This document shows, one piece after another, positions 2,894 to 64,000 of a stretch of DNA of 64,000 nucleotides. This DNA comes from Oikopleura dioica (lineage: Eukaryota; Animalia; Chordata): assembly GCA_907165135.1 (NCBI GenBank), contig OU015568.1, positions 16,689,208 through 16,753,207 on the forward strand. The letters are read 5' to 3'. Each line of letters begins with the position of its first letter. Position 1 is the first letter of the stretch. Below the pieces are notes generated by a model. The model was not told the DNA's origin. It made no database searches and saw only the letters and a program-made list of their open reading frames with translations. The translations under genes were made by a program, and so were the position numbers.

Positions 2894-3368
2894 AACTCAC
2901 TATCCCAGTTGACCAGTAGCTCAAGCTTCAGAACCTGTCACTATAAAACGCACAAATCCGAGACGAGTTAGCGTCTCGAAGCTTTTATTTTTCCCTGTTC
3001 AAAAGAAAAAAGTACCGCTAGTTCACAAAATGAAACATTGTGAGTTTTCAAAACTAAGACTTTTCAACTTTCAATTTTCAATTTTCTGTATAAGAGTCTT
3101 TCGAGCCAGTGTCGATTCAAGACAATCTGACGATCAAGATGCTGTTGTTTTATTTCTGTTATTTTTTCTTTTCACATATCAAATAATCAGAGTTATTCCC
3201 AAACGAACAAAATCATTCAAGAAAAAGCAACTCTTTCACAACTCCTTTTTCTGACGAATGTTAGTGCAATATTAATAATAATAAATATCGTATTTATATC
3301 AACCCTTGTCTTTACTCTTTCTTTTTCAGCAGTGTTGTTTCAATTGATTTCGCAGTAAAAAAGCAATC

Positions 3369-14314: not shown

Positions 14315-14480
14315 AATAAAGAAAAGTCAATTTGAAATTTATCAAAATTTCGATAATCAATATGATATTAACAGAATATCTCCAAGAAATGTCAAGGGTG
14401 ACGTCATATTTATTTAAAATATGAGGAAAGGAACTTTAAACAGTTGGACGGAGATTTTTAAAAGTCGTTAAAAGAGCGAA

Positions 14481-17400: not shown

Positions 17401-20400
17401 GCCGAGCAGACATTAGCACATCCATCAAATACCATGTTTTCGCCACACTCTTCCTCACAGCCAAGCTCATTCGCCCAAGAGCAGACTTGTGGTCGTAGAT
17501 TTGTCGCAATATTGTTCAAGCACTCTGTCGCGTATGCTTTTAGAGTAGAGCAGAGAGCCGTTCTATCTTCGCAGGTGTCAACCAGACAGGCGAGATGGAA
17601 GTCATCTTTGTCAACAGTGCACTGGTTGAAAGGCCCGCCAAGAATATTCTTATCGAGCGCAACACACATGTCAGTGACTTCATCGATGTCATCGCACTCA
17701 AAATCGTGAACTTCTCGGCATCGAGGATCAGGCTCGGCAAAGTCGTTCGCCCATTCAACGAGCTCAGTTTGATGAGCTCTCCAGTTTCCAAGACCTTGAG
17801 CTCGGCTAAACTCGTCATATGCAATACCGTTCCAGTTTCCGCAAAGGCCGAAAACGTGATTCATGTAGTAGTCTGGTAGATCAACTCTTAGATGAGCGAA
17901 GAAGAAATAGTTGAGATCAGCGCCGAACCATGTTTTTACTCTGAAATGATTTCCGTTGATTTCCATAAGAACATCATCATTTTCGAATGTCAGATCGTAA
18001 TTTCCTGCTTGACGATCGTCCAAAACTATATTTCTTCCCATAAGAGTCACAATGTATCGCGGAACTTCTTCCGGACCTTGAGTTTGACCTGGGAATTCGA
18101 ATGTCCAGCCGTTAATGCAAGACACTGCGTTCGCAACATTGCCACATTGTCTTTGGTCTACATCAATTTTGAAAGCGGGCATATTGAAAAACTCAGAATC
18201 TCCTTCTGACTCGACGAATGTGTACTTGCAAGCTCCTTGGAAATGATGTCTTCCGCCATCAAAAGTTGTGTAATGAGGATCTCCCTGTCCTGTGCATCGA
18301 CGAGAACCAGTTGAAACGGCGTATTTGGGGCAATCTTCTTCTTCAATACATTCGCCGTTATGCAAAACTTTGCCGTCCGCGCAGCCGCACATTGCAGTAA
18401 TGATGTCGTCATTCTGACAGCGATCAGAGTCTGAAACACCATTTGCGATGTCTTCGCATGTTTTTTGCTCTCTGCACTCAGTAGTACAGCCCTTGTAGAC
18501 CTGACCGACGGGACACTCCTCCTCGCAGCCTGTTGCTGCTGCCCAATTGCAAATTCTTTCGTAGTCAGCAGAGAGTGGACTTTTACCTTCGAGACATCTA
18601 GAAGCGTAGTCACCAATGATACCACAGTGAAGATCGTCTTGAATACAGCTGTTGAACAGGCAAGCTTCGTAAGTTGGAGTTCGATCTCCGAGGAACTCAC
18701 AACCGGCGAAAATGTTGCGATTAGCTGAGTTCTGAGGCGATTGCCGAACGGCGTCGCAACGGTCAGCTGCTGCATCGTAATCAGCGGCTGATAGATCTTC
18801 GCAAGGAGCGAGTCTATCGCCGTGAGAGCACGTGTTGTCATCATCAGTTTGGAATTGATCGCCAAATGCATCACTATCAAGAGCGTACTGTGTTATGTAG
18901 TCTCTTTCTTCTGAATTATCGCCATTGAAATTGCCACAGAGACCCGTCACTTGATTTTGGTAACAATTAGAAACGCCCACATACGCCGACCAAGAATAGT
19001 ATGAGAATCTTATATAGACACTGCCGTGAGCTCGTAGATAGACTGAGTTCACAGCACCAGTCAACCATGATCTTGTTACAGATAAATAGAAATCGTCCGT
19101 TGACACATACATATTTCGTGTGATTTGCGAGACAGCATCATACAATTTTACTCCAGTAAGATTGTCTGTCAGGGTAAATTCGAATCTGACATCTCTCCAT
19201 GAAGATGAATCATCAAGATTTCGAATGTGGAGGGAGTATCTTTTTTCGTCTCCGAGTGTGTAATCAGCTGCGTGGAAATCAAACCAGAGCTCATCGGTAA
19301 CAGCGCCAGCGAATGGAAGCCATGGCCGACGATTTTTCGTATCCACATTGAAGCCAGGATAGTCGACTGTGTCTTCTGCACTCGCTAAGTTATATCGGCA
19401 ATCACCATGGAAGCTGAGTTGATTCCAACCATCGAAAGGTTTAATATACGGATCATTATGGGCTCTGCAATATCCCCATGATTTTTCCTCACAAGGAAGT
19501 GGTCTACAAGTGACTCCAGTCGACGTACACTCGCAGATTTCATCGTCATGTCTGAACTCGCCTTGTTCGTAATAGCAGTGGAGATAGAAGCAGCCGCATT
19601 CACTTTCTTCAATGCAGCGTCCATTGTCGAAGATGTATCCCGGCTGGCAAACACACATGCTATCGATCTCGTCAACTGAGTCTCCACATCGTTGCTCATC
19701 TGTCAAATGTCGATTCGCACATGTTCTCCTCGCCGAGCAGACATTAGCACATCCATCAAATACCATGTTTTCGCCACACTCTTCCTCACAGCCAAGCTCA
19801 TTCGCCCAAGAGCAGACTTGTGGTCGTAGATTTGTCGCAATATTGTTCAAGCACTCTGTCGCGTATGCTTTTAGAGTAGAGCAGAGAGCCGTTCTATCTT
19901 CGCAGGTGTCAACCAGACAGGCGAGATGGAAGTCATCTTTGTCAACAGTGCACTGGTTGAAAGGCCCGCCAAGAATATTCTTATCGAGCGCAACACACAT
20001 GTCAGTGACTTCATCGATGTCATCGCACTCAAAATCGTGAACTTCTCGGCATCGAGGATCAGGCTCGGCAAAGTCGTTCGCCCATTCAACGAGCTCAGTT
20101 TGATGAGCTCTCCAGTTTCCAAGACCTTGAGCTCGGCTAAACTCGTCATATGCAATACCGTTCCAGTTTCCGCAAAGGCCGAAAACGTGATTCATGTAGT
20201 AGTCTGGTAGATCAACTCTTAGATGAGCGAAGAAGAAATAGTTGAGATCAGCGCCGAACCATGTTTTTACTCTGAAATGATTTCCGTTGATTTCCATAAG
20301 AACATCATCATTTTCGAATGTCAGATCGTAATTTCCTGCTTGACGATCGTCCAAAACTATATTTCTTCCCATAAGAGTCACAATGTATCGCGGAACTTCT

Positions 20401-23400
20401 TCCGGACCTTGAGTTTGACCTGGGAATTCGAATGTCCAGCCGTTAATGCAAGACACTGCGTTCGCAACATTGCCACATTGTCTTTGGTCTACATCAATTT
20501 TGAAAGCGGGCATATTGAAAAACTCAGAATCTCCTTCTGACTCGACGAATGTGTACTTGCAAGCTCCTTGGAAATGATGTCTTCCGCCATCAAAAGTTGT
20601 GTAATGAGGATCTCCCTGTCCTGTGCATCGACGAGAACCAGTTGAAACGGCGTATTTGGGGCAATCTTCTTCTTCAATACATTCGCCGTTATGCAAAACT
20701 TTGCCGTCCGCGCAGCCGCACATTGCAGTAATGATGTCGTCATTCTGACAGCGATCAGAGTCTGAAACACCATTTGCGATGTCTTCGCATGTTTTTGCTC
20801 TCTGCACTCAGTAGTACAGCCCTTGTAGACCTGACCGACGGGACACTCCTCCTCGCAGCCTGTTGCTGCTGCCCAATTGCAAATTCTTTCGTAGTCAGCA
20901 GAGAGTGGACTTTTACCTTCGAGACATCTAGAAGCGTAGTCACCAATGATACCACAGTGAAGATCGTCTTGAATACAGCTGTTGAACAGGCAAGCTTCGT
21001 AAGTTGGAGTTCGATCTCCGAGGAACTCACAACCGGCGAAAATGTTGCGATTAGCTGAGTTCTGAGGCGATTGCCGAACGGCGTCGCAACGGTCAGCTGC
21101 TGCATCGTAATCAGCGGCTGATAGATCTTCGCAAGGAGCGAGTCTATCGCCGTGAGAGCACGTGTTGTCATCATCAGTTTGGAATTGATCGCCAAATGCA
21201 TCACTATCAAGAGCGTACTGTGTTATGTAGTCTCTTTCTTCTGAATTATCGCCATTGAAATTGCCACAGAGACCCGTCACTTGATTTTGGTAACAATTAG
21301 AAACGCCCACATACGCCGACCAAGAATAGTATGAGAATCTTATATAGACACTGCCGTGAGCTCGTAGATAGACTGAGTTCACAGCACCAGTCAACCATGA
21401 TCTTGTTACAGATAAATAGAAATCGTCCGTTGACACATACATATTTCGTGTGATTTGCGAGACAGCATCATACAATTTTACTCCAGTAAGATTGTCTGTC
21501 AGGGTAAATTCGAATCTGACATCTCTCCATGAAGATGAATCATCAAGATTTCGAATGTGGAGGGAGTATCTTTTTTCGTCTCCGAGTGTGTAATCAGCTG
21601 CGTGGAAATCAAACCAGAGCTCATCGGTAACAGCGCCAGCGAATGGAAGCCATGGCCGACGATTTTTCGTATCCACATTGAAGCCAGGATAGTCGACTGT
21701 GTCTTCTGCACTCGCTAAGTTATATCGGCAATCACCATGGAAGCTGAGTTGATTCCAACCATCGAAAGGTTTAATATACGGATCATTATGGGCTCTGCAA
21801 TATCCCCATGATTTTTCCTCACAAGGAAGTGGTCTACAAGTGACTCCAGTCGACGTACACTCGCAGATTTCATCGTCATGTCTGAACTCGCCTTGTTCGT
21901 AATAGCAGTGGAGATAGAAGCAGCCGCATTCACTTTCTTCAATGCAGCGTCCATTGTCGAAGATGTATCCCGGCTGGCAAACACACATGCTATCGATCTC
22001 GTCAACTGAGTCTCCACATCGTTGCTCATCTGTCAAATGTCGATTCGCACATGTTCTCCTCGCCGAGCAGACATTAGCACATCCATCAAATACCATGTTT
22101 TCGCCACACTCTTCCTCACAGCCAAGCTCATTCGCCCAAGAGCAGACTTGTGGTCGTAGATTTGTCGCAATATTGTTCAAGCACTCTGTCGCGTATGCTT
22201 TTAGAGTAGAGCAGAGAGCCGTTCTATCTTCGCAGGTGTCAACCAGACAGGCGAGATGGAAGTCATCTTTGTCAACAGTGCACTGGTTGAAAGGCCCGCC
22301 AAGAATATTCTTATCGAGCGCAACACACATGTCAGTGACTTCATCGATGTCATCGCACTCAAAATCGTGAACTTCTCGGCATCGAGGATCAGGCTCGGCA
22401 AAGTCGTTCGCCCATTCAACGAGCTCAGTTTGATGAGCTCTCCAGTTTCCAAGACCTTGAGCTCGGCTAAACTCGTCATATGCAATACCGTTCCAGTTTC
22501 CGCAAAGGCCGAAAACGTGATTCATGTAGTAGTCTGGAAGATCGACTCGGAGGTCGGCGAAGTGGAAATAGTTGAGATCGGCGCCGAACCAAGTTTTGAC
22601 TCTGAAATGATTTCCGTTTATTTCCATAAGAACGTCATCGTTTTCAAAAGTCAAATCATAGCTTCCTGCTTGACGATCGTCCAGGACAATCCTTGATCCC
22701 ATAAGCGTGACAATGTATCTTGGAACTTCATCCGCAGGTTGCTTTCTCCCTGGGAATTCGAATGTCCAGCCGTTGATGCAAGTGACTGCGTTAGCAACAT
22801 CGCCGCATTGTCTTTGGTCAACATCAATTTTGAAAGCTGGCATATTTCTAAAGTTTGAATTTCCGCCTGACTCGACAAAGGTGTATTTGCAGGCTCCCTG
22901 GAAATGATGCTGTCCTCCATCGAATGTTGTATAATGGGGATCTCCCCATGCTCGACATCTAGCTGTGCTCGTAGATACAGCATCTCGAGGGCATTCATCT
23001 TCGTCAATACACTTTTCATTATGCCATATTTTTCCCCAACCACAACCACACATTGGTTGAATTCTTGGTTCATCCTTGCATCTTTCCATAATGTCGATAC
23101 CATCGGCGATATCGTCACATGTTCTCGCTTCATGGCACGCACTTGTGCAGCCCTTATAGATTTGAGTTTCTGGACATTCTTTTTCGCATCCTGTTGTCTT
23201 TGGCCATTTGCAAACTTCCCAATAGCCAGTTGTATGAATATTTTTTGTTTTTAAGCATTCTTGAGCATAATTTCTGAGGGTACCGCAGCCAATGTCTGGT
23301 CTTATACAGCTATTAAATAGACAAGTATCATAATATGGCTGTTTATCAATATGACAAGATCCGAAGGCCTTTCCAAATTGATCCTCGTTCTCATCAAGAA

Positions 23401-26400
23401 GCTCGAAGCACTGGTCGGTAACAATTTTATAGTCAGCATCAGACAGATCTTCGCATGGTTCAAAATGAGTACCATGACTGCAAATACCATCTTTTTGAGT
23501 AACAAAAAGCTCTCCAAATGCGTCCGAATCGTTCTCATATGCTAGTTTCATACTGTTTTCTTCTGCAACGTTTTCATTCCAATCTCCGCACATTCCGGAG
23601 ACTTGTTCTTTGTAGCATTGTGGAAGGTTCACTGTGAATGTCCACCAGTCAAAAGTGTATTTAATATCTATATCATACATGGGAAGATAAAGATCAAGTT
23701 CCCACTGTCTCGAATAAAGCTCGATTTCATAATCTTCTGTCTTAAGCTCCGTCTTCGAGGAGCCTCTGATGGTTTGATCGGTTTTTCTGTCCGTAAGAAT
23801 GAATTCTAAGGACACATACTCCTCTTCGTCAGAATTATTTATGTCATTTATGTACAATAAATAACGTTTTTCATCCCCGAAAGAATAATTTTTTTCATGA
23901 AATTCGATCCAAAACTCGTCAATTATTGAGCCTTCCGGGTTGTTTTCGAAAACACCGCGTCGACTTTTGAACTCAATGTTGAATCCTGGAAGAGTTCTTG
24001 TATCAGCGACAGACATAAGATTGTAACGACAGTTTCCGTGAAACATATATTGAGGTCCATCAAGTGTTTTGATATATGGATCACTGTGAACTATGCACTC
24101 TCCTCTCGTTTTTTCATTGCATGGGATCGGAGTGCATTGAACACCAGTGGACGTGCATGTGCATCGCTCATCATCGTTAGCAAATTCTGCGTCTTGCTGG
24201 TAGTAAACGCCGTTGTGATCCCAAACGCATCCACAATTTTCCTCAGGAATGCATTCTCCATTGTCGAGAATGAAGCCAGGTTGACAAACACACATGCTTT
24301 CAATCCTACCGACATCTGCCCCGCATCTTTCATCATCAGTAACATGTCTATTCATACATGTTCTTGATGCAGAACAGACACTTGCACATCCTTGGAACTC
24401 CATATTCTCGCCACAAGTCTCCTCGCAGCCAAGTTCTCTTGCCCATTCGCAAACCTCAGTTCTGGTTGTGCTTCCAGCGGTAACAGCATTCATGCATTCA
24501 GTTGCATATGCCTTTAATGATTGACAGACAGAGTCTCTGTTTTCACATGCATCAACAAGGCAAGCGATGTAGAATCCAGACTTATCATTAGGGCAACCGT
24601 TGAATGGTCCACCGGGTAAAGTCTCGTCAAGAGAAACGCATAGATCCGACACTTCATCGATATCATCGCACTCAATGTCATGTACTTCTCGGCATCGAGG
24701 ATCTGGCTCCGAGAAATCATTCGCCCAAGCGTTCAGCTCAAGCTGATGATCTCTCCATTGCCCTTGCCAATTCGCGCCTAAGCTTTGAAGTCGGCTAAAT
24801 TCATCATATAGCTGGGAGTTGTAGTTTCCGCAAAGACCGGATACTTGATTTTGATAGCAATCTGGAATCGCTGCTTTCAAGTCTGCGTGATAGCCCCAGT
24901 GGTCGCCGCGATCCGTGTAGGAGTATTCAATATCAACGTCGAACCAAGTTGTAAGCTTCACGGAATTTCCATTGACTTCGAAAAAGAAATCTGGAAGATT
25001 ATCTTTATTTGAAGTATACGAAACACCAGTTCGATCTTCGAGAACAATCAGTTCGTTATCAACTGCAAGCATAAATCTTGGAATCTCGTTTGGCAATTGG
25101 TCCTTTGCGAAAAATTCAAAAGTGAAACCCTGGACGCAAGAAACAGCAAGATTGTTCGCACCGCATCTTCGTTGATCGACAATGATTTTGAAAGCAGGCA
25201 TGTTACGGTATTCATCGACGCCTTCAGATTCGATGAAGGTGTATTTGCATGCTCCTTGGAAGTGGTGAGTTTCTCCGTCCAACGTGGTGTAGTGAGGATC
25301 GCCCCAGGCTCTGCAATGGCTCGTCGTCTCCGAAGCACAGTCAGTTGGACATTCACTTTCGTCGATGCACTGATCTCCGTGCCAGACTTGACCATGTGGG
25401 CATCCGCACATCGGACCTCGTACTAGTTCGTTGCCACATCGCTGTTTATTCGTGATTCCATCAACTACATCGTTGCAAGTCCTCGCTTCGATGCATTCAG
25501 TCGAGCATCCCTTGAACACCTGGCCTCCTGGACAGTTCTGTTCACAGCCTGTTCTCGATGGCCAGCTACAAATCTCGTCGTAGTACCAGACATCAGGGTG
25601 CTTGGTTGCAAGACATTTTTGCGCAAAGTCGTTTATGTGTCCACAAGCGAAATCGTCTTGAACGCAAGTGTTAAAGAGACACATGTCGAAATATGGCTGC
25701 TTGTCGATTCCAGTGCAATAACTGAAGATCTCTGAAGGTGATTTCCCATCCTTGAGCACATGGCAGCGCTCTCTTGCTTCGGCAAATTCAACACTTGTTA
25801 GATTATTGCAGGGTTCAAACCATTCTCCATGGGTGCAAATGCCATCCTTTTCAGTGACGTAAAGTTCGCCGAAGGCTTCTGAGTCTGCTTTGTAGTCATC
25901 TTCCATACGCTCTTCATCACGTTGATCATCATTCCAGTTTCCGCTGAGACCACTGATAAGGCCTTTGTAGCACGGTGTTATGTGCGCTTCGAAATTCCAG
26001 TAGTCATCGTCGAATTGCATGTAAACATTGTTCCAGAAAGTGATCTGTATCATCTTCGAGCTTACAGTCATATTTACATCTAAGAAGTTGTTCTCGTAAA
26101 TAAGAACTGATGAGTCGTATTGAAGACGACTGAAATTATCAGTCAGAAGAACACGTGCATTGAAGTTGCTTTTGCTATTCGAATTATCAATATTATTTAG
26201 ATAGATGGAGTAGCGTTTGGAATCACCGAGAGTGTATGTGTTCGAGTGAAATTCAATCCAGATTTCGTCGATTACCGAGCCGCTTCCGGAACTCCAATCT
26301 TCTCGTCTTCGATTTTTGATATCAATGTTGAAACCAGGCAGAGTAGCGGAATCTTCAACAGTGGCGAGATTGTAGCGACAATTGCCGTGGAAGCCCCATT

Positions 26401-28536
26401 CAAAGCCGTCCGAGACTCCGTCGATTGGCGCGATGTATGGATCACTGTGAACTGTTATGACTCCTCTTGTTTTCTCGTCGCACGGGAGAGGCGTGATGAC
26501 TAGTCCTGTAGAAGTACACTCAATCAAATCTTCTTCAGTTCGCGTGTTTTCTCCGAGCTTGAGATAGTGCCCTTGTTTCGGACCAGACTCGATAGTGCAG
26601 CCACAATCAGATTCAGGAATGCAGACTCCGAACTCAAGGATGAATCCGGGCTCGCATACGCACATGCTCTGTGTAAGCTGAAATCCAAGATTGGAGAAAA
26701 AACCGCACCGCCGGAATACTGGAAGGTGTTGGTTTTGGCAAGTTCTACTTCCACTGCAAGCGGACGCGCATCCATTCCAGACTGCGTTTTCACCGCATGT
26801 TTCTTCGCAACCGAGATCGCTAGCCCAGTTACATAGGTCCGGAATTGTAGGAGCAGTTCCAGCTAGCCAGTGAGTAAGCGAAATTGGTGGATTCATGCAA
26901 GCTTGAGCGTAGTTTTTGAAGGATTCGCATCGATTAGAGTCATCTTCACAGGTGTCCAGGATGCATGACGTGTGGTATGATGACTTGTCCAGGTCACATG
27001 ATGCGAAAACAGAAGCGGCGTTGTTCGGATCTAGTGGAAGGCATTCATCAATGGCGGTAGTGAGGTCGACTTCGCACTCAAAATCATGAATTTGTCGACA
27101 ACGGTCATCTGGTTCTTCAAATTGTTCAGCCCAGTCTGTAAGCCCTTCTTGGTAGGCTTTCCAGTTTCCAAATTGAGTGCTTGAAATCTGGTCGAATTCA
27201 TCGTATTGAATTCCATCCCAGTTTCCGCAAAGTCCATCGACATTGTCCTGGTAGCAGTCTGGAATAGTCACATCGAGCCTCGATCCTGCTTGGTAGAGGA
27301 CAGTAACTCCAAACCAAGTCGTAATTGTCACTGTATTGCCATTCGTAGAGAGTTGAAAATCCGGGTTGCCGTAGAAATCATCGGTGTAGAACTCGCCTAA
27401 TTCACGATCTTCTAAAACCATTCCGCGCATGAGCCATTTCCAGCCGTCAGCATTCACAGTGTATCTAGGAGCCTCGTCTTCAGCTTGATCCTTTCCTTGA
27501 AACTCAAAAACGAAGCCTCGGTTCCACGTGTAGGGTGAATTGAGCGTCATTGCAGCGAGGTCCGCGCGGACTTTGAACCAAGGCATGTTTGGGTACTGGA
27601 CAGTGTCGACTTCCACCATCGTGTACTCGCAAGTTCCCTGGAAGTGATGAAATTCCCCGTCAAATGTTGTATAGTGAGGATCACCACTGCTGACGCAAGT
27701 TTTGTAAGACCCAGCGTAGCACTTATCCGTGAAATGCCCGGACTCGCAGACAGCCTTGAGTTGTTCCTGGCAATTCTCCGCCTGGATTCTTCCTTCACCG
27801 TTGATGGAAGTGCAAGAGTTGTCGCCATCGTACCAGTAGCGTCCTGTCTCGCTCAAGGCTTCTCGGAGAGCGCCGACGCGGTTTTTATCGCCAGCAGGCT
27901 CGGCAAGCCAACTTCCACGGAGATAGCAGTAAGCAAGAGCTTCATCAAAATCCATTTCTTCTGCGGATATTTCGTACGCGTACTCGGTCTCCTAAGAATA
28001 TTCATTAGAAATCAAGTTAATTAAATATTTTTTATAGAATATCTTAATTTAATTTTTGTTTTCAATTCAAGTTAAAGTAGTAGTTACAGTACCTGATATT
28101 CCTTACGCTCGGAAAGCTTTCTTATATCCTTGACAGACCGTCTAGGAACTCGAATTTTCTTTCCCGAAACTCTATCATGAGCTTCGAGGCAAGCGTATGA
28201 ATCCATCCAGCCATCAAGCATATCTGCCAAGTTCACCAGATTCGTGGCCATCGCTTCTCGTGGATCGAATCTCTTCATTTCGACCAGCTGGTAGGTTGGG
28301 TCGGTGAAGGACGAGTCGCATGGGCCGCTATCCTGGTAGAACTCGGCTGCTCGTTTGGCTCTCTCGTAACGATTTTGAAAAGACGAGGCGAATTTCTTGC
28401 CGCTGACCAAGTTGATCTTGGTGAAAATCTCGGCCGCGAATTCGTCTGCTTCCTCCCAGAACTCGATAAATTGAACATCGGCGCTGACGTAGCTAACGCC
28501 ATTCAGCGCTAGAATCTTCAGCAGCGGCTCTCTCAT
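14481..28536 (-). CDS. Giant secreted FCGBP/zonadhesin-like protein (~4,616 aa if one missing A is restored). Signal peptide, helical WxDxYAC domain, C-type-lectin-like domain, 10 VWD-C8-TIL assemblies, C-terminal domains, Thr-rich tail
   Basis: Exons 28536-28093, 27991-15550, 15484-14942 and 14901-14481 are joined by in-phase GT-AG introns of 101, 65 and 40 nt. The ORF track gives the VWD motifs (GDPHY, DPYI, GLCGNWN/FN). There is a 1-nt frameshift at 20792-20796. Confidence 0.88.
17161..22537. repeat. Near-identical intragenic tandem repeat, period 2331/2330 bp, ~2.3 copies
   Basis: Identical off-frame ORFs recur at 17281/19612/21942 and 17540/19871/22201. Identity ends at 17160 and 22538. 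Confidence 0.95.
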
Positions 28537-40687: not shown

Positions 40688-42267
40688 ATGACGCTTTCGT
40701 TAGGCAACAACAAGTACAATCGCCAGAATTGGGAAGACTCCGACTTCCCGATTCTCTGCCCGACATGTCTCGGAGACAATCCCTACATCCGAATGATGAA
40801 GGATAAATACGGAAAAGAATGTTCCATCTGTGAACGACCCTTTACCACTTTCAGGTGGTGCCCGGGTAGGGGAATGAGATACAAGAAAACGGAAATTTGC
40901 CAGACTTGCGCAAAGGTATTATAATGGACAGGCGGTATTCGTATTTGAATGTACGTGCATTTCTTATTTCTATTCGTTTTTATGGTCATCTTGAGCGTTT
41001 TCTTAGATGAAAAATGTCTGCCAGACATGCGTCTTCGATCTCGAGTACGGGCTGCCTGTGGCTGTGAGAGATCATGCGCTGGGACTGAAGGATGATATAC
41101 CGGTGAGTTTCGAGGCAAATTTTCGCGCTGAAAATTAATTTAGACGGGTGATTTCAACAAAGAGCATTTCCACCAAAATCTTGGAAAAGAACTGGCGCTA
41201 CAAGGAGACGATTTGAGAGAGGCGCATTCAGCGCCGAATGCGTTTTTGGAGAGAATTTCGGCTGGGCGGAAAGGGCCGTATTACAAACGAAACTTGCCGC
41301 ATATTTGTTCTTTCTGGGTCAAGGTCAGATCTTAGATCTCTTCTCCATCCGAATTTCTTTCTAGGGCGAGTGTAGAAGAGGAGAAGAGTGTCCGTACCGG
41401 CACGAGAAGCCATCAGATCCAGATGATCCGCTCTCTGTTCAAAATATTGTCGATAGATTTTACGGTACGAAGGATCCCGTCGCCGACAAGCTCCTTCGAC
41501 GAGCTGAAGAAATGCCTTCCATGGCGCCTCCAGAGGACAAGGTAACACTCTTCTTCTGATCAAATCCCTTCTCAATTTTCAATAGACGATTACGACTCTC
41601 TGGTGCGGTGGCGTGACTTCTGCACTGACAGAAACAGATCTTCAAGAGTATTTCTACCAATTCGGCGAGGTTGCTTGCATCAACATCGTCCAGAAAAACT
41701 CATGCGCCTTTGTCCAATTTACGAAACGAGAATCGGCCGAGCACGCGGCAAACAAGTGTTATGGAAGACTCGATCTCAAGGTAAATCATTTTTCCTAGCG
41801 TTTTTTTATGTTTTAAAAGGGAGTTCGCTTGAATGTTCGATGGGGCAAGCCGCAGCAATCAGGAGCGAAGCATCACGCCGATGTGGAGAAAACGACTCCC
41901 GTTCCAGGTCTTCCCGGGCCTCTACCGAACCCAGGAAAAGTCACTCAATACGATCCGTCCAAGAGAGCGAAACTGGCTGAAAGCGTGCCAAAACCAATGT
42001 CTGAACCTATTGATCTGCCAACAATGGGGGCAATGGGAGCCCCTAGAGCGCCATCTGAGTTTGCTGGACCTGACAAAGGAGGAAATTCTGGCTTCCAGAA
42101 GGTATGAAGAAATCATATTTTTGCTGTTTCCAATATTTTCTTTCAGATTCATTATCCATCGCAATCGAAAGACAGAATGGGCTCTGGAAAGTATTCGCAC
42201 ATGGCTCCCCCTTCTCAGTACAACAACGCAAATCAGGTATTCCTTGATTGTCCATAAAATTCGCTAG
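40688..42267 (+). CDS. RBM22: Pre-mRNA splicing factor RBM22 (Cwc2/Slt11-like; zinc finger plus RRM)
   Basis: [96 protein letters not shown]. The final exon boundary is uncertain. Confidence 0.95.
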
Positions 42268-42980: not shown

Positions 42981-43045
42981 TAGTAGTAATGGCGAGAGCA
43001 CTCTCGGGAAGAGTTTTTGTTATTCTAGTTGAGTGGTTAATTACT
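42981..43045. repeat. 65-bp repeat, inverted partner of 47364-47428
   Basis: tagtagtaatggcgagagcactctcgggaagagtttttgttattctagttgagtggttaattact versus the reverse complement at 47364-47428: 3 mismatches. Confidence 0.9.
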
Positions 43046-47149: not shown

Positions 47150-47295
47150 GCCAGGATTCGACCAAAATCCGAATCCTGGCCCCCTAGCCAGAATTCGACT
47201 TAGAGCTGAATCCTAGGCCCTCGATTCATATTGCCTAGCCTGGCACCCGGGGCCAGGATTGGGCTCTTCAGACGAATTCTGGCACCTGAATCTTC
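47150..47295. repeat. Short array of CCTGGC-N5-6-GCCAG palindromic units
   Basis: gcctggcccccgagccagg, cctggccccctagccag, gcctggcacccggggccagg recur with GAATTC/GAATCC spacers. Confidence 0.55.
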
Positions 47296-47677
47296 TGAAT
47301 TCGCAGGTTAGCTGTCTTTGCTTCATCAAATGTCCGCAATAGTCCATTTTTGCAATTTGAACAAGTAATTAACCACTCAACTAGAATAACAAAAACTCTT
47401 CCCAAGAGTGCTCTTGACATTACTACTAGCCTTCCATAAGATTTTAAGCTTAGCTACGTGAAATTTTTGAAAAATTTGCAACTCTGTGCTGAATAGAGAA
47501 GTCTCAAATAAGGATAAAATTGATGATGTCGGAAGCGACGTAATATAACATCCTTCAGGTGACGTAAATAGCCCAGATTTGGTGTTGAGAGACCAGCAAT
47601 TTTGAATCGTAAAATTCTATTTTCCTGTCTTTTTCCCGCAACAGTTAAATCAGAATCCAACGACATTTATTGAGAGA

Positions 47678-49668
47678 ATGCTCTGGTTTTTCATATTGTT
47701 ATGCTTGACGAATGTGGAGACTTGTGTTTTATTCGATCTGGATTGCCAAGATAACAATGCTGTGCTGTCCTTGAATGAAACATGTTTCAATATCAGAGAG
47801 CCGAGTTTTGGACTGAACCTGACCGGCGTTTATGTTTCCAAAACTCCGGAAATTATGAACTTGAGTTCTGTCCCGACGGATTGTCAATTGGAAAAAGGAG
47901 AAGCGATTCCGTACAATACCTGCTTCAATCAAACAAAGGCATATCTACTAAACGCGATCGAGGTTAACGGAGAAGTTGTCCATCTCATTCCGTCAGAAGG
48001 GATCACGTGCGCAGAAGCAAAGCAATCAAATTTTACTTTGAAATCAGAAAAAGAAGCTCTGATTTCTTCGATAAATAGCGCACGAGGGGTAATACAGAGC
48101 GAGATCTTTGATTTGATCATATCTGGAGGAGACAAGCTCGGCGAAACTATGAATTTTAAAGGATCAATAGCATCGGAGGATTTTTATGTGAAAATCAATA
48201 GCTGTTCATTAAAAATTGCTGGGAAGAACTTTACAATCATCGACAACAGCAACATAACAAACATTGGATTGAGCTTGAGGTTTTTTAAACACTCATCGGC
48301 AAGTATTATTTTTATTTAATTTATAATTGTAGAACAAGAAGTGCCTGCAGAAGTCGAGAATATGAGATTCCCCGAATGTCAACAAGAGTCGACAAAGTTG
48401 ATTCTTTCGAGCTTGAATGTTCGATGGAGATGAGAAAACGCGACTCAGTTCTGATTCTTTCCGACAAAACAGGATACTCGCGACTCAGCTATGTTCTTTC
48501 TCTGGACACTTTAGATCAGACAAATCAGGAGATAGCCCCTTCAACAGATGAATATTTTGAAAACGTTTTCCATGCAGTTTGGAAAGACGAAAACTATATT
48601 TTTGGAGGCGACCAGGACAACTACAAGGTAGCTTTCGAAATGAAAAAGATAAATCATAAATAAAGATTGCAAAATTCGTCTGTTGCGAGTTTTCTGAGCT
48701 CCCTCTTCGATTAAATTTTGCAGCGTCCCGTCACTCATCAGGAATTGCGCTCTATGACAATTCTGGAGTTATAATTTGTTTTGGTGATGACACAAGAAAA
48801 TGTGACAAATTTAATGGTGAAGAAACATCTATTTTAGCAGCGGCAACGACTTTTACTCATAAACTTTCGGGTTTGATAAATTAATTAATATAATACCAAT
48901 GCGTCGAAATAGAAAACCCTAACAAAGAATCTTGTATGGCAAATTATAATAATTCGTCGCTAGTGATTGCTGGACTTACGTAAGGGTCTTAACATGTTAT
49001 ATAGTTAATATAGTTTTTTATTTGAAAGACCCTTTTTGAGAAATAAAAAGGTCGGAGTATTCAAGAATGATATGTGGACTTATTTGAATGATAACCCTGC
49101 GTACGAATAAAGGACTAGTTTATTCGTTAGTATTATTTTAGAACTCGAGCAATGCAAGCTTGTCTTGAAGTAGACGACGGGATTCTAGTATCGGGTCTAG
49201 AATTATTTATTGAAAGCGGATTCTTTGCTTTTCCATAAAATTTTGGAACCCTTTCTTCAGTTTTTGGAGGTTACTATGGATCGACAAAATATAAACGCAT
49301 CGATCTTCTTCGAAACGATATTTGGACAAATAACGGAACTCTACAACAAAAGATTGAGCTTGGAAACGTCATTTCCTTTGGGTTTTTGTTTTTGATATTT
49401 CTCAAATTATTCGATTATTGCAAATTATAACGGAAGTATTTATGAAGAAGTAGAGTGTAAAGATTAAACCCAATCAAAATTAAAACAAAGATCTACTATT
49501 ATCGTGGTCAGTGGTGCATCGGTGGGAGTCAGCAATGCTCATGTTGAGAAGATTTTTTGGGACGGTAATGCCGCTACTTCTGGAGGAATTATTGATCACA
49601 TTCCGATTGCAACAACTTTTGCACGACCGATTTTGATGAAAACTGACTCCGATTTCTGTGCTATATAA
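47678..49668 (+). CDS. Secreted ZP-like domain plus kelch-like propeller family protein
   Basis: Signal MLWFFILLCLTNVET and a Cys pattern resembling a ZP module (FYVKINSCSL..IID). Then YIFGGDQDNYK, IICFGDDTRKCDKFNG, VFKNDMW, and a last exon ending RPILMKTDSDFCAI*. Confidence 0.6.
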
Positions 49669-49981
49669 ATTATGTTTAACCTCTGCCCGCATAGAAAATT
49701 TGATTTTTCAGGACTACAAATCAAAGTTTTCGGAAATCTTATATGCTTTAATTGATGAGCAAAGGCAAAGATCCACTGTCCGCTGATAACGAGAGAATTT
49801 GCAATTGGGCTGAAGCGACAGGCTGTGAAGAAGAGGGTCCCGCTGGCCAGGTCTATGAAGACGGAATTTGATGAATTTTCAATTGATTTTTCTTTATTTC
49901 AATTTGTTATTATCAAACACAAGTGGCCTTCTCACATAAGCATAATCTCCAGAATAGGCAGGTCGCATGGAAATAGCTCTA

Positions 49982-50133
49982 CATCAGGGATCCCTGTAAT
50001 GCGCCGGAAAATACAGCGCTCTGATTCGTCGAGCGTACAGCGCCCATCTTTCCCTTTTGCCTCTGAAGCGGCCAAAAGAAAGCGCACTGATGGGGCGGCG
50101 GATGAGTCAGTGCACTACAGGGATCCCTGATGG
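49982..50133. mobile_element. Tc1/mariner-type MITE with TA duplication, inserted in the propeller-gene relic
   Basis: TA|CATCAGGGATCCCTGTA ... TACAGGGATCCCTGATGG|TA. The uninterrupted paralog at ~14225-14240 (gacacTAgaactatttcc) shows the empty site. Confidence 0.88.
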
Positions 50134-50739
50134 TAGTATCAATTATCTTCTCGTCCGTAATCAGATCGTTTTCCAGCGATAGTCTTCGTGTTGAGTGAGT
50201 ATTTTCCTCTCTTCCGTCTTCTTCGTCGATCAGAAAAAAGAAATGAGCTTGCTATTCAAATCTTTATTAGACGATCACGACTCTTTCGTGCGGTGGCGTG
50301 ACTTCCGCCTTGACGGAAACAGATCTTCAAGAGTTTCCACCCTTAATATTGTCGAGGGAATGTGCGGCTGTCCAGAGGGAGAAGTTCTTGAAGCCGGCGT
50401 CTGTGTTCCTGAAACATCATGTGGATGTCTAACTGAAGACGATGATTACGTCGAACTTAATGGAGAAATTTTTACTGAAGCAGAGAGGTGTACTTGTGGA
50501 AGCGAAGGACTGACATGCGAAGCTTTGTCCTGCCCATGTGATGGTTTTGATACTTGTACGGATTTCTTGAGACTCGGTCCTCAAAGTTCCGGCTTCTCAA
50601 AAAGACATATCAATTAAAAGTTATCATCGATATTTTCCGGCAAAAAGTCAAAAATTTTGATATTTTTAAATTTTAAACTGAAAACCTGGCTTATTTTATC
50701 AAACAATGACGTTGGTTCAGGCTTTTTTGAAACAAATTC

Positions 50740-50996
50740 GAACTTAAATCGTGCTTTTTTACGGATTTTTTTGGATTCTGCCCGGATTTTACAGACATAG
50801 ACAAAAGTCTGGGGTTGTCCGGATTTCAAGGACAAATACGGACAAATACGGATTTTGTCCGGATCGTGACAAAAGTCCGGTCTAGCCTGTCCGTTTTTTC
50901 CTCGACCAAAAGACTAAAAGTCTAGTCTGTCCGCACGGACAAGACCGGACAGACACGGATAAAATCCGTACACGGACATGTCCGTTTAGAACCCTG
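50740..50996. repeat. CGGACA/TGTCCG-rich repeat, MITE-like, ending ...TTTAGAACCCTG
   Basis: More than 10 copies of cggaca/tgtccg/acggat. Its right end abuts the propeller fragment at 50997; the left end is undefined. Confidence 0.6.
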
Positions 50997-51919
50997 ATCA
51001 CAGGGAGTGATGTATGGGAGGCCGTTGGGCCTGGTTTCGTCGATGCTTTATTTTTTGTTTTTTTTTTTTACATAAAAAGCACGTGTCCTTCAAAATTCGA
51101 GTGTTTCGAGTCAAAGCTCAAAAAACCCATCTTTCTGATAGATCTTTTTACGAAAAAAGAATTTGAAACTTTGAAAAACAATTTCCTTCTTTGTTCCCCT
51201 CGTAAATTGAAAACGTAGTTGCAGTAGAATGAACTTTAAACAGTTGGATGGAGATTTTTTGCTTCGTCAGGTGCTGAAGGAGCAGGCAGAAGAAGACGTT
51301 GACTAAACTTTCCAGTTGTCAGTCAAATAATCTCCGTATAAACGTCGAGTCTCATAAACCAGCACTTTTTCGTTTTTTTTTTCTTCGATAGCTTTTTCTC
51401 TCTAAGAGATCACTAACTATGGTTACTGAAAAAGAAACAGAGACAAGTGCGAATCAGATTGAGCAACCTAAAATTCAGGTGAAGAATGCAGGTAAAGGCA
51501 AATATAAATAACGCAGAGATTGAAAGTGTCTGGACTGTCACTGCATTGGCATTCTCAAGCAGAAGGATGACAAGGTCTATTTGTGTCCCGAAGAAGTATT
51601 GTCGACGAGGAGCATAAACACGCGGAAACAAGACTTGAAGGAACGGTTATTGACTTTAATTAACAGTATTGCTACTAATTTACAGTTGTAGCACAACCTT
51701 TTTAACCCACAGCAAAAATGTTGACAAAGTGATATTAATAAGTTATAAATAATAACCACGTTGATTCAGAAGAAACTGACAAGGAAAAGAGTCCGTCAGA
51801 GGTCAACCCTGGCAAAACATGGATTTTCGACAAATGATCAAAAGATATCCTACCTCAGCATTGGCTCGATATTCTGGCTAACCATCATCCTCATAAGTAC
51901 CTTTTGATAGATTTTCTTA

Positions 51920-53355
51920 GTCGAAACAATTTTCAGCGAATTGGTACTCGCTTCAAAGGTCACGAGGTGTAACGACTTTTCTGACTTCTGAATGCCATCG
52001 AAACTACAAAGAATGCGTCAAAATCGCAACAATGGACTACTGCGGGCATTTGATGAAGCAATGTTTTGAAACTAAAGAGTTCATCCTTCCAGAATCAGTT
52101 TCTAAAATTGAGCAAACGAAAGTCCCTCCGCACGTATTCTCCCAAGACGAAAACAAAGTCAATCTCCGCCGCTGTCAGAAGAAACAATTTTACGACCTGA
52201 AAATTTGCCGCCATCTTTGTTCGAATTCAATTGTTTTGGAATCAAGGAGGACTAACTCGATGTCGCCCTGTGAGTCCATTTGCTTTGAACTGACACGATC
52301 TTCCGATTCTGCTGGAGAAGTTTGCCCGTTTCAGAAATACTGTAGAAATGGATGTCCTTGTCGTTATTACCAATGCGAGAAGCTGAAGTCTCGGCAGATA
52401 TTGGTTCCTGTTTTTGACTTAAAGACGTACACAACATATGATGGTGAAGCTAATGGTGACGCTGAATTTATTACAGGTCGTTGGACGCCTCGAATTAATA
52501 AAAAGCGGTATCAAATAAATTTATCGAACTTGAATGGAAATGATAAACAATTGAATGTCTCCGATTCTTTATACCCCTATGCACGTGTTTACTGATTGAT
52601 TTTTAAGTAAATATTTTGCCCCTTTTTGTGGGTGCCCTTTATTGGGTTGTATGATTCCAAATCAATAAAAACGGGAAAGTCAACCGGTGCCACTTTCCTC
52701 AATGGCGAGCACTACTTGGTTGATGCCATTGGAAATCTGGCGAAAGTCAGAGAAAACGGCGATGCTCCGATATTTATTGCAAATCGACATAGGAATATGT
52801 GGGTAAGCCTCTTGCTAGTCGTATTTTAGTTTGAGTTTCAGAGGGTTTTTTGTTTTTCACTTTGGATCATCGATCGGTACTCATCAAATCGAGATTCGTC
52901 GTCGAGACAAAGGAAGAAAGTATTTTCCTGTCGTTGTCATCTGAAAGAGATCAAATAAAATTATATTTAAAATTTGACAAATTTTGATCATGAGAAGTTC
53001 TCCGACCGGAAGAGTCAATAAATGCTTCTATTATGCTCCGGATTACAACCTGAATCGCTTCGAAGAAGCACAGGGCTACATCGCCAACAATCACTTCAAC
53101 GCGAAAGTGTCGTCAGTGAGCTTCAGAGAAGTGTTTTACTTGATGAGTGTCCGGCTAGGTGACCATTATATCCAGTTGTCGACGACTGTAGCGTTGAACA
53201 GAATCAGAATAAGCGAAGAATTGGAGAAAGGTTGGAAGAAATCCGAAATCGGAATGCCAGCAGAGTTGCGAGACTTGGATCCAGTACATGTGATTCCCTT
53301 GAAACGAGTTTCACCTATTTTTGGACTAAACCAGTTTATCGGAGTGCATTTTTGA
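51920..53355 (+). CDS. Cys-rich module (C..C...C...CP.QKYCRNGCPCRYYQC) plus a divergent propeller-like region; 5' end unresolved
   Basis: ORFs 52032-52595, 52626-52829 and 52984-53355 are co-oriented with intron-sized gaps. GATFLNGEHYLV and KCFYY motifs resemble the propeller family. Confidence 0.5.
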
Positions 53356-63381: not shown

Positions 63382-64000
63382 GTCAAGCCCAAATTTAATT
63401 AAAAGCCAGGGAAGGGGGGGGGAAACGGCCCTTCGGGCCGTCAAGCCCAAATTTAATTAAAAGCCAGGGAAGGGGGGGAAACGGCCCTTCGGGCCGTCAA
63501 GCCCAAATTTAATTAAAAGCCAGGAAGGGGAAACGGCCCTTCGGGCCGTCAAGCCCAAATTTAATTAAAAGCCAGGGAAGGGGAAACGGCCCTTCGGGCC
63601 GTCAAGCCCAAATTTAATTAAAAGCCAGGGAAGGGGGGGAAACGGCCCTTCGGGCCGTCAAGCCCAAATTTAATTAAAAGCCAGGGAAGGGGGGGAAACG
63701 GCCCTTCGGGTCGTCAAGCCCAAATTTAATTAAAAGCCAGGGAAGGGGGGGAAACGGCCCTTCGGGCCGTCAAGCCCAAATTTAATTAAAAGCCAGGGAA
63801 GGGGGGGAAACGGCCCTTCGGGCCGTCAAGCCCAAATTTAATTAAAAGCCAGGGAAGGGGGGGAAACGGCCCTTCGGGCCGTCAAGCCCAAATTTAATTA
63901 AAAGCCAGGGAAGGGGGGGAAACGGCCCTTCGGGCCGTCAAGCCCAAATTTAATTAAAAGCCAGGGAAGGGGAAACGGCCCTTCGGGCCGTCAAGCCCAA
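63382..64000. repeat. Tandem satellite, ~56-bp unit (52-58), 11 full copies plus a partial, running off the window
   Basis: Unit GTCAAGCCCAAATTTAATTAAAAGCCAGGGAAG(n)AAACGGCCCTTCGGGCC. Unit starts at 63382, 63440, 63496, 63548, 63601, 63657, 63713, 63769, 63825, 63881, 63937, 63990. Confidence 0.97.

Follow-up and report, generated by a model that had tools for sequence, protein, structure and literature searches.

A spacer mosaic of about 1.5 kb in Oikopleura dioica, composed of shuffled DNA pieces from two nearby places

In the stretch of Oikopleura dioica DNA analysed here (64,000 nucleotides, called the window), the spacer of a two-gene interval contains a patch of approximately 1.5 kb, which is a mosaic of shuffled DNA pieces from two nearby places. 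On balance, and with modest confidence, we regard this patch as a real, single-copy and non-functional relic, which was made by error-prone break repair or template switching from diverged templates that have since been lost. One template would have been a diverged copy of a 3.35-kb block, in which the 3' ends of an oikosin-30-like VWD gene and of a Kelch-like propeller gene face each other; the second template would have been approximately 95 bp of RBM22, comprising a mini-intron and part of the RRM exon. Pieces of both would have been joined out of order, either in error-prone double-strand-break repair or by replicative template switching (of the MMEJ or the MMBIR/FoSTeS kind). A TA-targeting MITE inserted later into one of the pieces, and a second repeat (TE2) is situated at one of the joints.

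The fragments were mapped by BLASTN of positions 49400-51700 against the whole window. This self-comparison recovered every fragment that a first-pass annotation, made from the letters alone, had listed, and the scrambled mosaic described there was found in the same order and sense (E-values from 1e-7 to 1e-86). The matched loci are situated 8-38 kb away from the patch, which begins 94 bp downstream of a same-strand gene and contains the following features:

49762-49860, plus strand (sense): fragment A, source 16255-16157, inverted, 91% identical, E-value 3e-34
about 49862/49867 to 49981, minus strand: fragment B1, source 14346-14230, inverted, ends 89-96% identical, middle 56 nt diverged
49982-50133, no strand assigned: MITE1, a non-autonomous element of 152 bp with 21-nt terminal inverted repeats and a TA target duplication
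50134-50244, minus strand: fragment B2, source 14231-14121, 80% identical, E-value 2e-23
50195-50617, plus strand: open reading frame (ORF) of 140 codons, GTG start, first ATG at 50243
50247-50341, plus strand: fragment C, source approximately 41548-41658, direct, 85-87% identical, E-value 1e-20
50334-50565, plus strand (sense): fragment D, source 16078-15847, inverted, 90% identical, E-value 2.5e-86
50556-50996, no strand assigned: TE2, a multi-copy, palindrome-rich, non-autonomous repeat between D and E
50997-51224, minus strand: fragment E, source 13106-12906, inverted, 79% identical with a 26-bp indel, E-value 3e-54
51228-51259, source orientation kept: fragment F, source 14428-14459, direct, 30 of 32 positions identical (94%), E-value 1e-7

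Fragment A comprises the end of the C8 domain and the start of the TIL domain from the last unit of the VWD gene, which is oikosin-30-like, and is 81% identical to the VWD units at 18589 and 20919. Fragment D contains the second half of the TIL domain and the next Cys-rich module of the same last unit. The propeller gene contributed its final codons, the stop and the 3' UTR or flank (B1) as well as sequence of its last exon (B2), and these two pieces are collinear across MITE1. In the case of C, the BLASTN match covers 50259-50341 (41574-41658) with a core at 50259-50334 that is 87% identical; the fragment represents the 3' part of an RBM22 mini-intron with its AG acceptor, of which 27-38 nt are kept, followed by the first approximately 72 nt of the RRM exon, and the alignment enters the intron with a 10-nt deletion. 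Two fragments needed correction. Fragment E had been described as the middle of the propeller gene; the match is real, but it consists of non-coding intron sequence directly upstream of a propeller-blade exon, with stops in all six frames, and the homology ends approximately 4 nt before the acceptor near 13110. Similarly, F had been taken as 28 bp of the VWD gene's 3' flank; the piece exists, but it measures 32 bp and belongs to the 3' UTR, as its source in the spacer between the convergent genes is bordered on the minus strand, according to our reading of the sequence, by the stop codon of the VWD gene at 14481 and by an AATAAA at approximately 14412.

The VWD and propeller pieces had been assumed to come from separate loci. 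Instead, all of them map to one contiguous block of 3.35 kb (12906-16255), which represents the facing ends of the two convergent genes. The earlier description as at least six fragments from three genes overstated the degree of shuffling, since five of the six fragments belong to this block and only one pair is displaced, while the sixth (C) stems from RBM22 at approximately 41.5 kb. Compared to the block, the patch shows a single swapped pair, a single inverted piece of 32 bp (F, which runs in the opposite sense to A, B, D and E) and the insertion of approximately 95 bp of RBM22 mini-intron and exon. Altogether six templated segments are found at this one site, four inverted and two direct with respect to their sources. 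The view that one chromosomal neighbourhood was sampled was correct, with sources at 12.9-16.3 kb and 41.5 kb, and the mosaic was made at the DNA level. The identity of the pieces to the present source loci ranges from 79 to 94%, and the non-coding pieces are approximately 20% diverged. Pfam searches with the ORFs neighbouring the patch and an Rfam search with the patch gave no match. A propeller paralogue is located at 55.8-57.5 kb. By eye, the gene at 47.7-49.7 kb possibly belongs to the propeller family as well; tblastx gave no match for it.

It could be argued that the chimeric joins were created by the assembler, an objection already foreseen in the first-pass annotation, because the short repeats MITE1 and TE2 are situated inside the patch and no single short-read contig spans it as a whole. 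However, Logan short-read contigs of run X1, which have 0 mismatches to the window, span 48200-50039, 50056-50554 and 50977-51295 at a depth of 118-128, the same as in the flanks. These independent contigs cross the A/B, B/C, C/D and E/F joints and both outer edges, with gaps only inside the two repeats. Moreover, the second sample (run X3) also carries the arrangement flank-A-B, with 2 mismatches. Since X1 contigs without mismatches cross the junctions at single-copy depth, the patch is not an assembly chimera; this explanation is largely refuted, and we consider it extremely improbable.

Run X3 also revealed differences between individuals. It lacks 620 bp (49047-49666) at a site 95 bp upstream of the patch, where 7 nt of filler are found, and it also contains an empty-site form of MITE1 (joint 49980>50136), i.e. 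the element is polymorphic. The deletion and the MITE-empty allele demonstrate structural instability of this neighbourhood within the population. Furthermore, no patch-type contig was seen over C-D in X3, and the structure of the patch may thus differ between haplotypes. Run X6 was too diverged to score presence or absence of the patch.

The pieces were copied as DNA and not as mRNA, because an intron, an acceptor site and UTR sequence are included. A retrocopy or processed pseudogene was therefore rejected: C keeps the RBM22 mini-intron with its intact AG acceptor, E is intron sequence, and neither a poly(A) tract at the 3' end of any piece nor a target duplication was seen. Chimeric retrocopies that arise by template switching of reverse transcriptase also join the transcribed regions of several genes, head to tail, whereas the patch retains intron and acceptor in C and E.

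Pack-MULEs and Helitrons typically carry gene fragments as mosaics of mixed orientation, and capture of the Helitron or Pack type had been put forward in the first-pass annotation next to template switching and microhomology repair. According to this idea, a mobile element took up host fragments (as Pack-MULE, Pack-TIR or by Helitron transduplication) and inserted here, which would be in line with the mosaic itself, with its chimeric exon and intron fragments of several genes, with the ORF over a junction, and with the multi-copy repeat TE2 inside the patch. However, the patch is bounded neither by terminal inverted repeats nor by a target duplication. A search for a flanking inverted repeat (49560-49800 against 51200-51450) gave a best score of 8.5, compared to a mean of 8.6 and a maximum of 12 after shuffling, and no direct repeat or target-site duplication was found at the patch edges. 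By eye, neither the patch edges (49762 and 51259) nor the two TE2 ends show Helitron-type features (5' TC, 3' hairpin with CTRR, insertion between A and T). In X1, the depth over the parts of host origin is 118-128, which corresponds to a single copy, and the unit has therefore not transposed. Finally, TE2 is limited to 50556-50996, and MITE1, which has a TA duplication of its own, simply inserted later, i.e. the transposable elements of the patch are a junction occupant and a nested insertion rather than carriers. A transposon carrier was rejected on the grounds of the missing inverted repeats, the missing target duplication and the single-copy depth, and we rate this origin as highly improbable.

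Of the mechanisms named earlier, repair or replicative template switching is favoured. At the C/D junction (50335-50342), an imperfect microhomology is common to the RBM22 and the VWD source. This microhomology is longer than the GA(G/A)TTT noticed before, with GAGTATTTCTACC and GAATTTTCAACC agreeing at 10 of 12 positions with one gap (chance 0.0005 at fixed register and 0.003 with sliding of +/-3 nt). The A/B joint shows a 1-nt overlap, and the B/C and E/F joints contain 2-3 nt of filler. Such a combination of microhomology, minimal overlap and short filler is expected of microhomology-primed joining. It must be mentioned that clear microhomology is found at one of the five junctions; the divergence of 10-20% hides the original states of the others.

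The host context is relevant here. Classical NHEJ is absent from O. dioica, which depends on microhomology-mediated end joining instead (PMC12426944, PMC11067885); MMEJ/TMEJ is described as its only end-joining route (PMC12426944; Deng et al. 2018, cited in PMC11067885). MMEJ has also been proposed as a driver of genome scrambling in this species (PMC11067885). The "patchwork" insertions of polymerase-theta MMEJ/TMEJ share with the patch this host context, microhomology at the joints, short untemplated or unmappable filler and segments of mixed origin. However, typical templated insertions of polymerase theta are <25 bp long and derive from the immediate flanks of the break (PMC12426944), whereas the pieces of the patch measure 32-232 bp and match sequences 8-38 kb away. 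These far larger sizes and distances count against a repair origin, as does the restriction of clear microhomology to a single junction. Furthermore, the missing donor is an extra assumption, and four of the five local pieces share one orientation with one swap, so that much of their order is already accounted for if an inverted duplicate underwent ordinary decay. Rearrangements of the FoSTeS/MMBIR, chromoanasynthesis type consist, like the patch, of several pieces of tens to hundreds of bp, taken in both orientations from within tens of kb, and their joints show a few bases of microhomology or short filler. The patch differs from them in being germline-fixed, diverged and only 1.5 kb long, in the lack of a large-segment copy-number change alongside, and in templates that are 10-20% off the present sequences.

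This last point is related to the most peculiar feature of the patch. Nearly all differences between the coding pieces and the neighbouring genes fall on synonymous sites. In D we counted 18 synonymous and 6 nonsynonymous differences (dN/dS 0.07). Fragment C has 6 synonymous and 1 nonsynonymous differences, a bias that lies in the RBM22 frame and not in the frame of the ORF (p = 0.02 for C alone). In B2 the numbers are 10.5 and 11.5 in the frame of the propeller gene. Fragment A shows 9 differences from its source, 5 of them nonsynonymous, and comparison with outgroups assigned 4 of these 5 to the patch, including the change of a conserved Cys to Gly. In total, the patch lineage acquired 6-9 nonsynonymous changes in 253 sites, the Cys to Gly change among them. 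The assumption that the patch evolved neutrally since it was copied from the local gene is contradicted by these data (pooled p = 1.2e-5), and a single recent event from local genes is excluded, because the templates were 10-20% different from the sequences now present. The local genes had previously been looked upon as the sources. Judging from the synonymous bias, the present neighbour genes instead appear to be relatives of the templates, while the direct donors were probably diverged functional copies that are now lost. The distance between these templates and the present neighbours would amount to approximately 0.25-0.5 substitutions per neutral site, and the patch itself would have drifted by only approximately 3% since its formation.

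Candidate donors were sought in several data sets. A closer donor in the same genome was rejected, since the X1 depth over A and D is fully explained by the patch plus the known VWD copies of the window. X1 contains a third RBM22-like contig, with G at 50287 and A at 50297, which agrees with the patch at neither position. Two exact-pattern scans of JGI metagenome contigs, with D and with C, N standing at the variable sites, found no donor in this environmental DNA. Among the RBM22 contigs in Tara/ENA assemblies (L002-L006), one is of the same lineage (95%) and ends before the RRM exon; the remaining ones are too diverged, intron positions included. At 24 silent sites, the Norwegian O. dioica orthologue (L001) agrees with the patch at 7, with the source at 10 and with neither at 7, i.e. 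polarising the silent changes with this orthologue is saturated.

The same observations bear on a possible, although rather doubtful, origin of the patch as a paralogous block wrecked in place. An inverted segmental duplicate, comprising the propeller gene and the abutting 3' end of the VWD gene, would have joined a local propeller-family cluster, stayed at least partly functional for long before its breakdown, and then been fragmented by successive deletions; the repair of one break with filler would have moved B and brought in the RBM22 piece. This would fit with five local pieces that form one 3.35-kb block, four of them in the same orientation and one swap away from collinearity, with the propeller paralogue at 55.8-57.5 kb and perhaps the unmatched gene at 47.7-49.7 kb as family members, and with the ongoing deletion with filler in the neighbourhood. 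A long functional phase would account for the synonymous-biased divergence of D, and a short dead phase for the Cys to Gly change in A and approximately 3% nonsynonymous drift. However, it is not evident how a 3' fragment of the VWD gene could have been functional, and yet D has the strongest purifying signature. Moreover, the RBM22 piece is equally synonymous-biased, which makes a lost RBM22 paralogue necessary too, F is inverted and displaced, and BLASTN and tblastx within the window revealed no further trace of VWD or propeller exons in the flanks of the patch. Decaying segmental duplicates and mosaic pseudogenes generally resemble the patch in having pieces of one block mostly in one orientation, insertions of transposable elements and the loss of a conserved Cys; the patch in contrast is non-collinear, contains an unrelated RBM22 piece and shows the substitution pattern of functional genes rather than of neutral decay.

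Differences that lie almost only at silent sites, in pieces of two unrelated genes and in a patch that can encode neither protein, would also follow if a single templated rearrangement had used a deeply diverged second haplotype or lineage of this neighbourhood (an introgressed or lost chromosome segment), or if the patch were a nucleotide-constrained locus of sense and antisense gene pieces that makes regulatory small RNAs; taken together, we consider these two readings improbable. Under nucleotide constraint, for example as a source of antisense or small RNA directed against the parent genes, the patch would have stayed fixed while the parents drifted silently. This would explain without a lost donor why D and C differ almost only at the synonymous sites of their parents, and also the mixed orientation of the pieces. 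However, 4 nonsynonymous changes in the 99 nt of A arose in the patch, the non-coding pieces have diverged by 20%, and the patch includes a polymorphic MITE, a repeat and possibly a presence/absence variant of C-D. Words of the stretch were absent from the listed RNA data sets, and Rfam gave no match. Hence, constraint at the nucleotide level is in our opinion a very remote explanation on its own.

To our knowledge, O. dioica has the most scrambled genome of all animals. Comparisons within lineages and populations have been called for to find the mechanism of this scrambling (Plessy et al. 2024; PMC11067885). The patch represents a junction-resolved, small-scale example, with pieces copied at the DNA level, one microhomology joint and short fillers; in addition, a second individual shows neighbouring polymorphisms, namely a deletion with filler and the MITE. 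Should such relics turn out to be numerous, the repair pathway responsible for the scrambling could be deduced from their junctions. The divergence at silent sites only would furthermore point to gene copies or haplotype blocks that were lost from this genome recently enough to leave readable fragments. Taken alone, the patch is one non-functional locus, and its value is that of a lead and not of a discovery.

The ORF at 50195-50617 exists and spans the RBM22-VWD join as claimed before. The suggestion that new secreted genes are assembled in this way was not supported, since the ORF consists of antisense B2, out-of-frame C, D in frame with half a TIL domain, and 17 repeat codons, has no signal-peptide-like start by eye, and matched neither a Pfam family nor a homologue among proteins of 77-245 aa. 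Nevertheless, it was considered whether a young chimeric gene is present, in which a selected small Cys-rich protein is encoded either by this ORF or by a transcript, SL-trans-spliced or from an operon, that is spliced at the captured acceptor of RBM22. D with its dN/dS of 0.07 is read in the VWD frame by the open ORF, a polypyrimidine-AG acceptor from C is situated just upstream, and the distance of 94 bp to the same-strand gene resembles operon spacing. On the other hand, the TIL domain is halved and the D part contains 11 Cys, an odd number; the synonymous bias of C does not follow the frame of the ORF; the last 17 codons are repeat-derived; and the neighbourhood is polymorphic for the MITE and possibly for C-D itself. 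Words of the stretch were absent from all 18 listed O. dioica RNA data sets, which is weak evidence given the uncertain lineage of these data. In a bulk RNA run from a diverged lineage (X14), reads match only 55 nt of D and come from another gene, and the flanking genes are without cover, so that this run carries no weight. A functional chimeric gene is, in our view, very improbable.

Regarding the repeats, the presence of a MITE inside the propeller piece was confirmed, with the inverted repeats (CATCAGGGATCCCTGTAATGC, 95% complementary) and the TA duplication given above; the source is uninterrupted at the corresponding TA. MITE1 has approximately 5 times the single-copy depth and is putatively a Stowaway-like (Tc1/mariner-type) MITE, the superfamily being assigned by the TA duplication alone. 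The terminal inverted repeats of TE2 are imperfect (TACGGATTT... / ...AAATCCGTA). Its depth amounts to 930-1640 compared to approximately 125, the X1 contigs are interrupted at its two edges, and its fold z-score is -3.5.

The interval 49400-51700 was searched by BLASTN against the whole window, and the alignments recovered every fragment that the first-pass annotation had listed for a mosaic patch of ~1.5 kb (49762-51259).

Pieces of the patch: position, source, orientation relative to the source, identity and, for coding pieces, synonymous (syn) and nonsynonymous (nonsyn) differences.
A: 49762-49860, from 16255-16157 (VWD gene), inverted, 91% (E 3e-34); 4 syn, 5 nonsyn, including conserved Cys to Gly
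B1: 49867-49981, from 14346-14230 (propeller gene), inverted, ends 89-96%
MITE1: 49982-50133, repeat, no source in the VWD/propeller block
B2: 50134-50244, from 14231-14121 (propeller gene), inverted, 80% (E 2e-23); 10.5 syn, 11.5 nonsyn in the propeller frame
C: 50259-50341, from 41574-41658 (RBM22), direct, 85-87% (E 1e-20); 6 syn, 1 nonsyn in the RBM22 frame, which is not the frame read by the patch ORF
D: 50334-50565, from 16078-15847 (VWD gene), inverted, 90% (E 2.5e-86); 18 syn, 6 nonsyn, dS 0.49, dN 0.035, dN/dS 0.07
TE2: 50556-50996, repeat, no source in the block
E: 50997-51224, from 13106-12906 (propeller gene), inverted, 79% (E 3e-54)
F: 51228-51259, from 14428-14459 (VWD/propeller spacer), direct, 94% (E 1e-7)

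A and D belong to the same long exon, the last VWD-C8-TIL unit of the VWD gene, where 78 bp lie between them; in the patch, B, MITE1 and C stand in place of this interval. B is the last exon, stop and 3' flank of the propeller gene. E, previously described as the propeller middle, has stops in all six frames and its homology ends ~4 nt short of a blade-exon acceptor, hence it represents an intron and not coding sequence. F belongs to the 3' UTR or spacer of the convergent gene pair, located between the VWD stop (14481) and a polyadenylation signal (~14412, minus strand). C begins within the ~44-nt mini-intron of RBM22, of which 27-38 nt including the AG are kept with a 10-nt deletion, and extends 72 nt into the RRM exon. 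Since intron, acceptor and spacer sequences are present, the template of the copying was DNA rather than spliced RNA. The five VWD/propeller pieces can all be traced to a single uninterrupted block of 3.35 kb (12906-16255); inverted, this block would give the order A, D, F, B, E. The order found is A, B, C, D, TE2, E, F. Thus, B and D have exchanged places, F has moved and been inverted, and C is of outside origin. The proposed shuffling of six fragments from three genes holds in that the pieces are non-collinear, but with five of them from a single block the patch is less scrambled than described.

The giant VWD gene (minus strand, ~14.5-28.5 kb) has its best relatives among O. dioica proteins, including oikosin 30c; a Norwegian-reference VWFD protein shows 72% identity to it across the queried region, and the window lineage differs from this reference. 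All DNA runs that contain the stretch carry the label of a single marine animal species, and parts of it occur in marine metagenomes. The convergent partner at 12.4-14.3 kb (plus strand) is a Kelch-like propeller gene (weak match), and RBM22 is located at 40.7-42.1 kb with the Pfam domains STL11_N and RRM. In the Norwegian reference (scaffold FN653104.1, 10001-20712), the convergent downstream neighbour of the VWD orthologue (P0002, 1834 aa) is an EF-hand gene instead of a propeller gene, hence the adjacency copied by the patch is lineage-specific. Fragment A has identical BLAST matches, spaced 2.33 kb, in the VWD units at ~18.5 and ~20.9 kb (window 15546-27955), and two giant ORFs of this region overlap out of frame at 20489-20807, implying an intron or frameshift there.

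Chimeric assembly, a possibility raised initially, is largely ruled out. Logan contigs of the DNA run X1 cover 48200-50039, 50056-50554 and 50977-51295 with 0 mismatches and at the depth of the flanks (118-128), crossing the left edge, the junctions A/B, B/C, C/D and E/F, and the right edge. Contig breaks are confined to the interior of MITE1 and the TE2 borders; these are multi-copy repeats with ~5x and 8-13x the single-copy depth, respectively. In a second DNA run, X3, flank-A-B1 is present with 2 mismatches in 390 nt, and a form without 49981-50135 represents the empty MITE site. MITE1 has 21-nt inverted repeats, TA on either side of an insertion site that is intact in the source, and is polymorphic in X3; its insertion is a separate event, later than the patch. 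No patch-type contig over C-D was seen in X3, where a gap in the contigs is no proof of absence. Another X3 contig joins 49046 to 49667 with the 7-nt filler GAAAATA between them, i.e. a 620-bp deletion or insertion polymorphism (49047-49666), hence the patch neighbourhood is visibly unstable. The stretch missing in X3, 95 bp from the patch, comprises what look like the 3' exons of the gene upstream.

The non-coding pieces differ from their source by 20%. If the patch had drifted neutrally since copying from the present genes, ~35-41% of the differences would be synonymous; the synonymous excess over this null model gave p = 8e-5 for D, 0.02 for C, 0.38 for A and 1.2e-5 for the pooled pieces. 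Nonsynonymous changes were assigned to lineages by means of the outgroup proteins P0001 and P0002 and the VWD gene's own second unit, which placed 6-9 on the patch and 1-2 on the source lineage and thus sets the unconstrained drift of the patch at ~3%. With a neutral divergence of 0.25-0.5 in total, the larger part of the differences would have arisen in sequences functioning as VWD and RBM22 genes. Neither reference served to polarise the silent sites: the Norwegian orthologue is saturated, and the RBM22 contigs from environmental data were insufficient in length or too diverged. The patch and the window's own units together account for all of the X1 depth over A and D, hence no closer copy of them survives in the genome. 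X1 also contains one extra RBM22-like contig outside the window (RRM-exon-like, depth ~100, seen via 50287 and 50297), neither the window RBM22 nor the patch, which points to either an additional RBM22 copy or a further captured fragment.

Because of the 10-20% divergence after the event, only the C/D junction is callable. Here, GA-T-TTTC-ACC is common to both sources (10/12 with one gap), a level reached by random window 13-mers in 0.05% of trials, or 0.3% when sliding by +/-3 nt is allowed. A/B shows a 1-nt overlap, B/C and E/F each hold 2-3 bases without assignable source, and D/TE2 has AC..ATTT in common with the end of the repeat. For the two outer flanks, the highest-scoring inverted match equalled the shuffle mean, direct repeats were absent from the patch edges and no Helitron-type ends were seen by eye, so that transposon capture was rejected. 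The observation itself is confirmed and its first interpretation partly supported: the DNA-level mosaic and the C/D microhomology stand, whereas Helitron/Pack-type capture fails for lack of bounding ends.

The patch is probably a dead mosaic, assembled at the DNA level through either error-prone repair of a break or replicative template switching. O. dioica is without classical NHEJ and relies on microhomology-mediated joining (PMC12426944), a suspected driver of its extreme genome scrambling (PMC11067885). Judged from piece sizes and template distances, MMBIR/FoSTeS-type switching is a better fit than insertion by polymerase theta, where inserts are usually <25 bp (PMC12426944). The chief alternative assumes an inverted paralogous block in a propeller-family cluster, followed by stepwise decay and one filler-repair event; it accounts for the near-collinearity of the pieces, but leaves the functional-gene signature of the 3' VWD fragment and the RBM22 snippet unexplained. 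Repair or template switching, which we favour, and decay differ mainly in the location of the lost donor. The patch adds a further case to a known kind of rearrangement relic, and is a junction-resolved lead on scrambling and recent gene-copy loss in O. dioica.

The reported 140-codon ORF (50195-50617) is present, with a GTG start and the first ATG at 50243. It crosses B in antisense and C out of frame, keeps the frame of D and takes in 17 codons of TE2; it includes half a TIL domain, with 11 cysteines counted in the D part. No signal-peptide-like start was seen by eye, neither a Pfam family nor a homologue among short proteins was found, and an Rfam search of the patch gave no match. Of the O. 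dioica RNA data sets listed (18), none contained words of the ORF. In X14, bulk RNA from a diverged O. dioica lineage, the neighbouring genes are also without cover. Several hundred X14 reads match only 55 nt (50351-50406) and continue on both sides with unlike sequence; their origin is a TIL-containing gene with high expression in that lineage.

Downstream of the patch, 51975-52427 has a depth of 2500-4500 compared to ~125 in all three DNA runs and is a large gene family or mobile exon; it includes the start of a Cys-rich ORF (52032-52595) without Pfam match, whose first codons (MDYCGHLMKQ) recur as an inverted fragment at 47295-47363. A 65-bp inverted duplicate (42981-43045 and 47364-47428, 95% identity), between the 3' side of RBM22 and the gene preceding the patch, could be a further small relic or part of a TE. 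Finally, 63382-64000 consists of tandem repeats (period ~56 bp, copies 95-98% identical) that continue past the window end.
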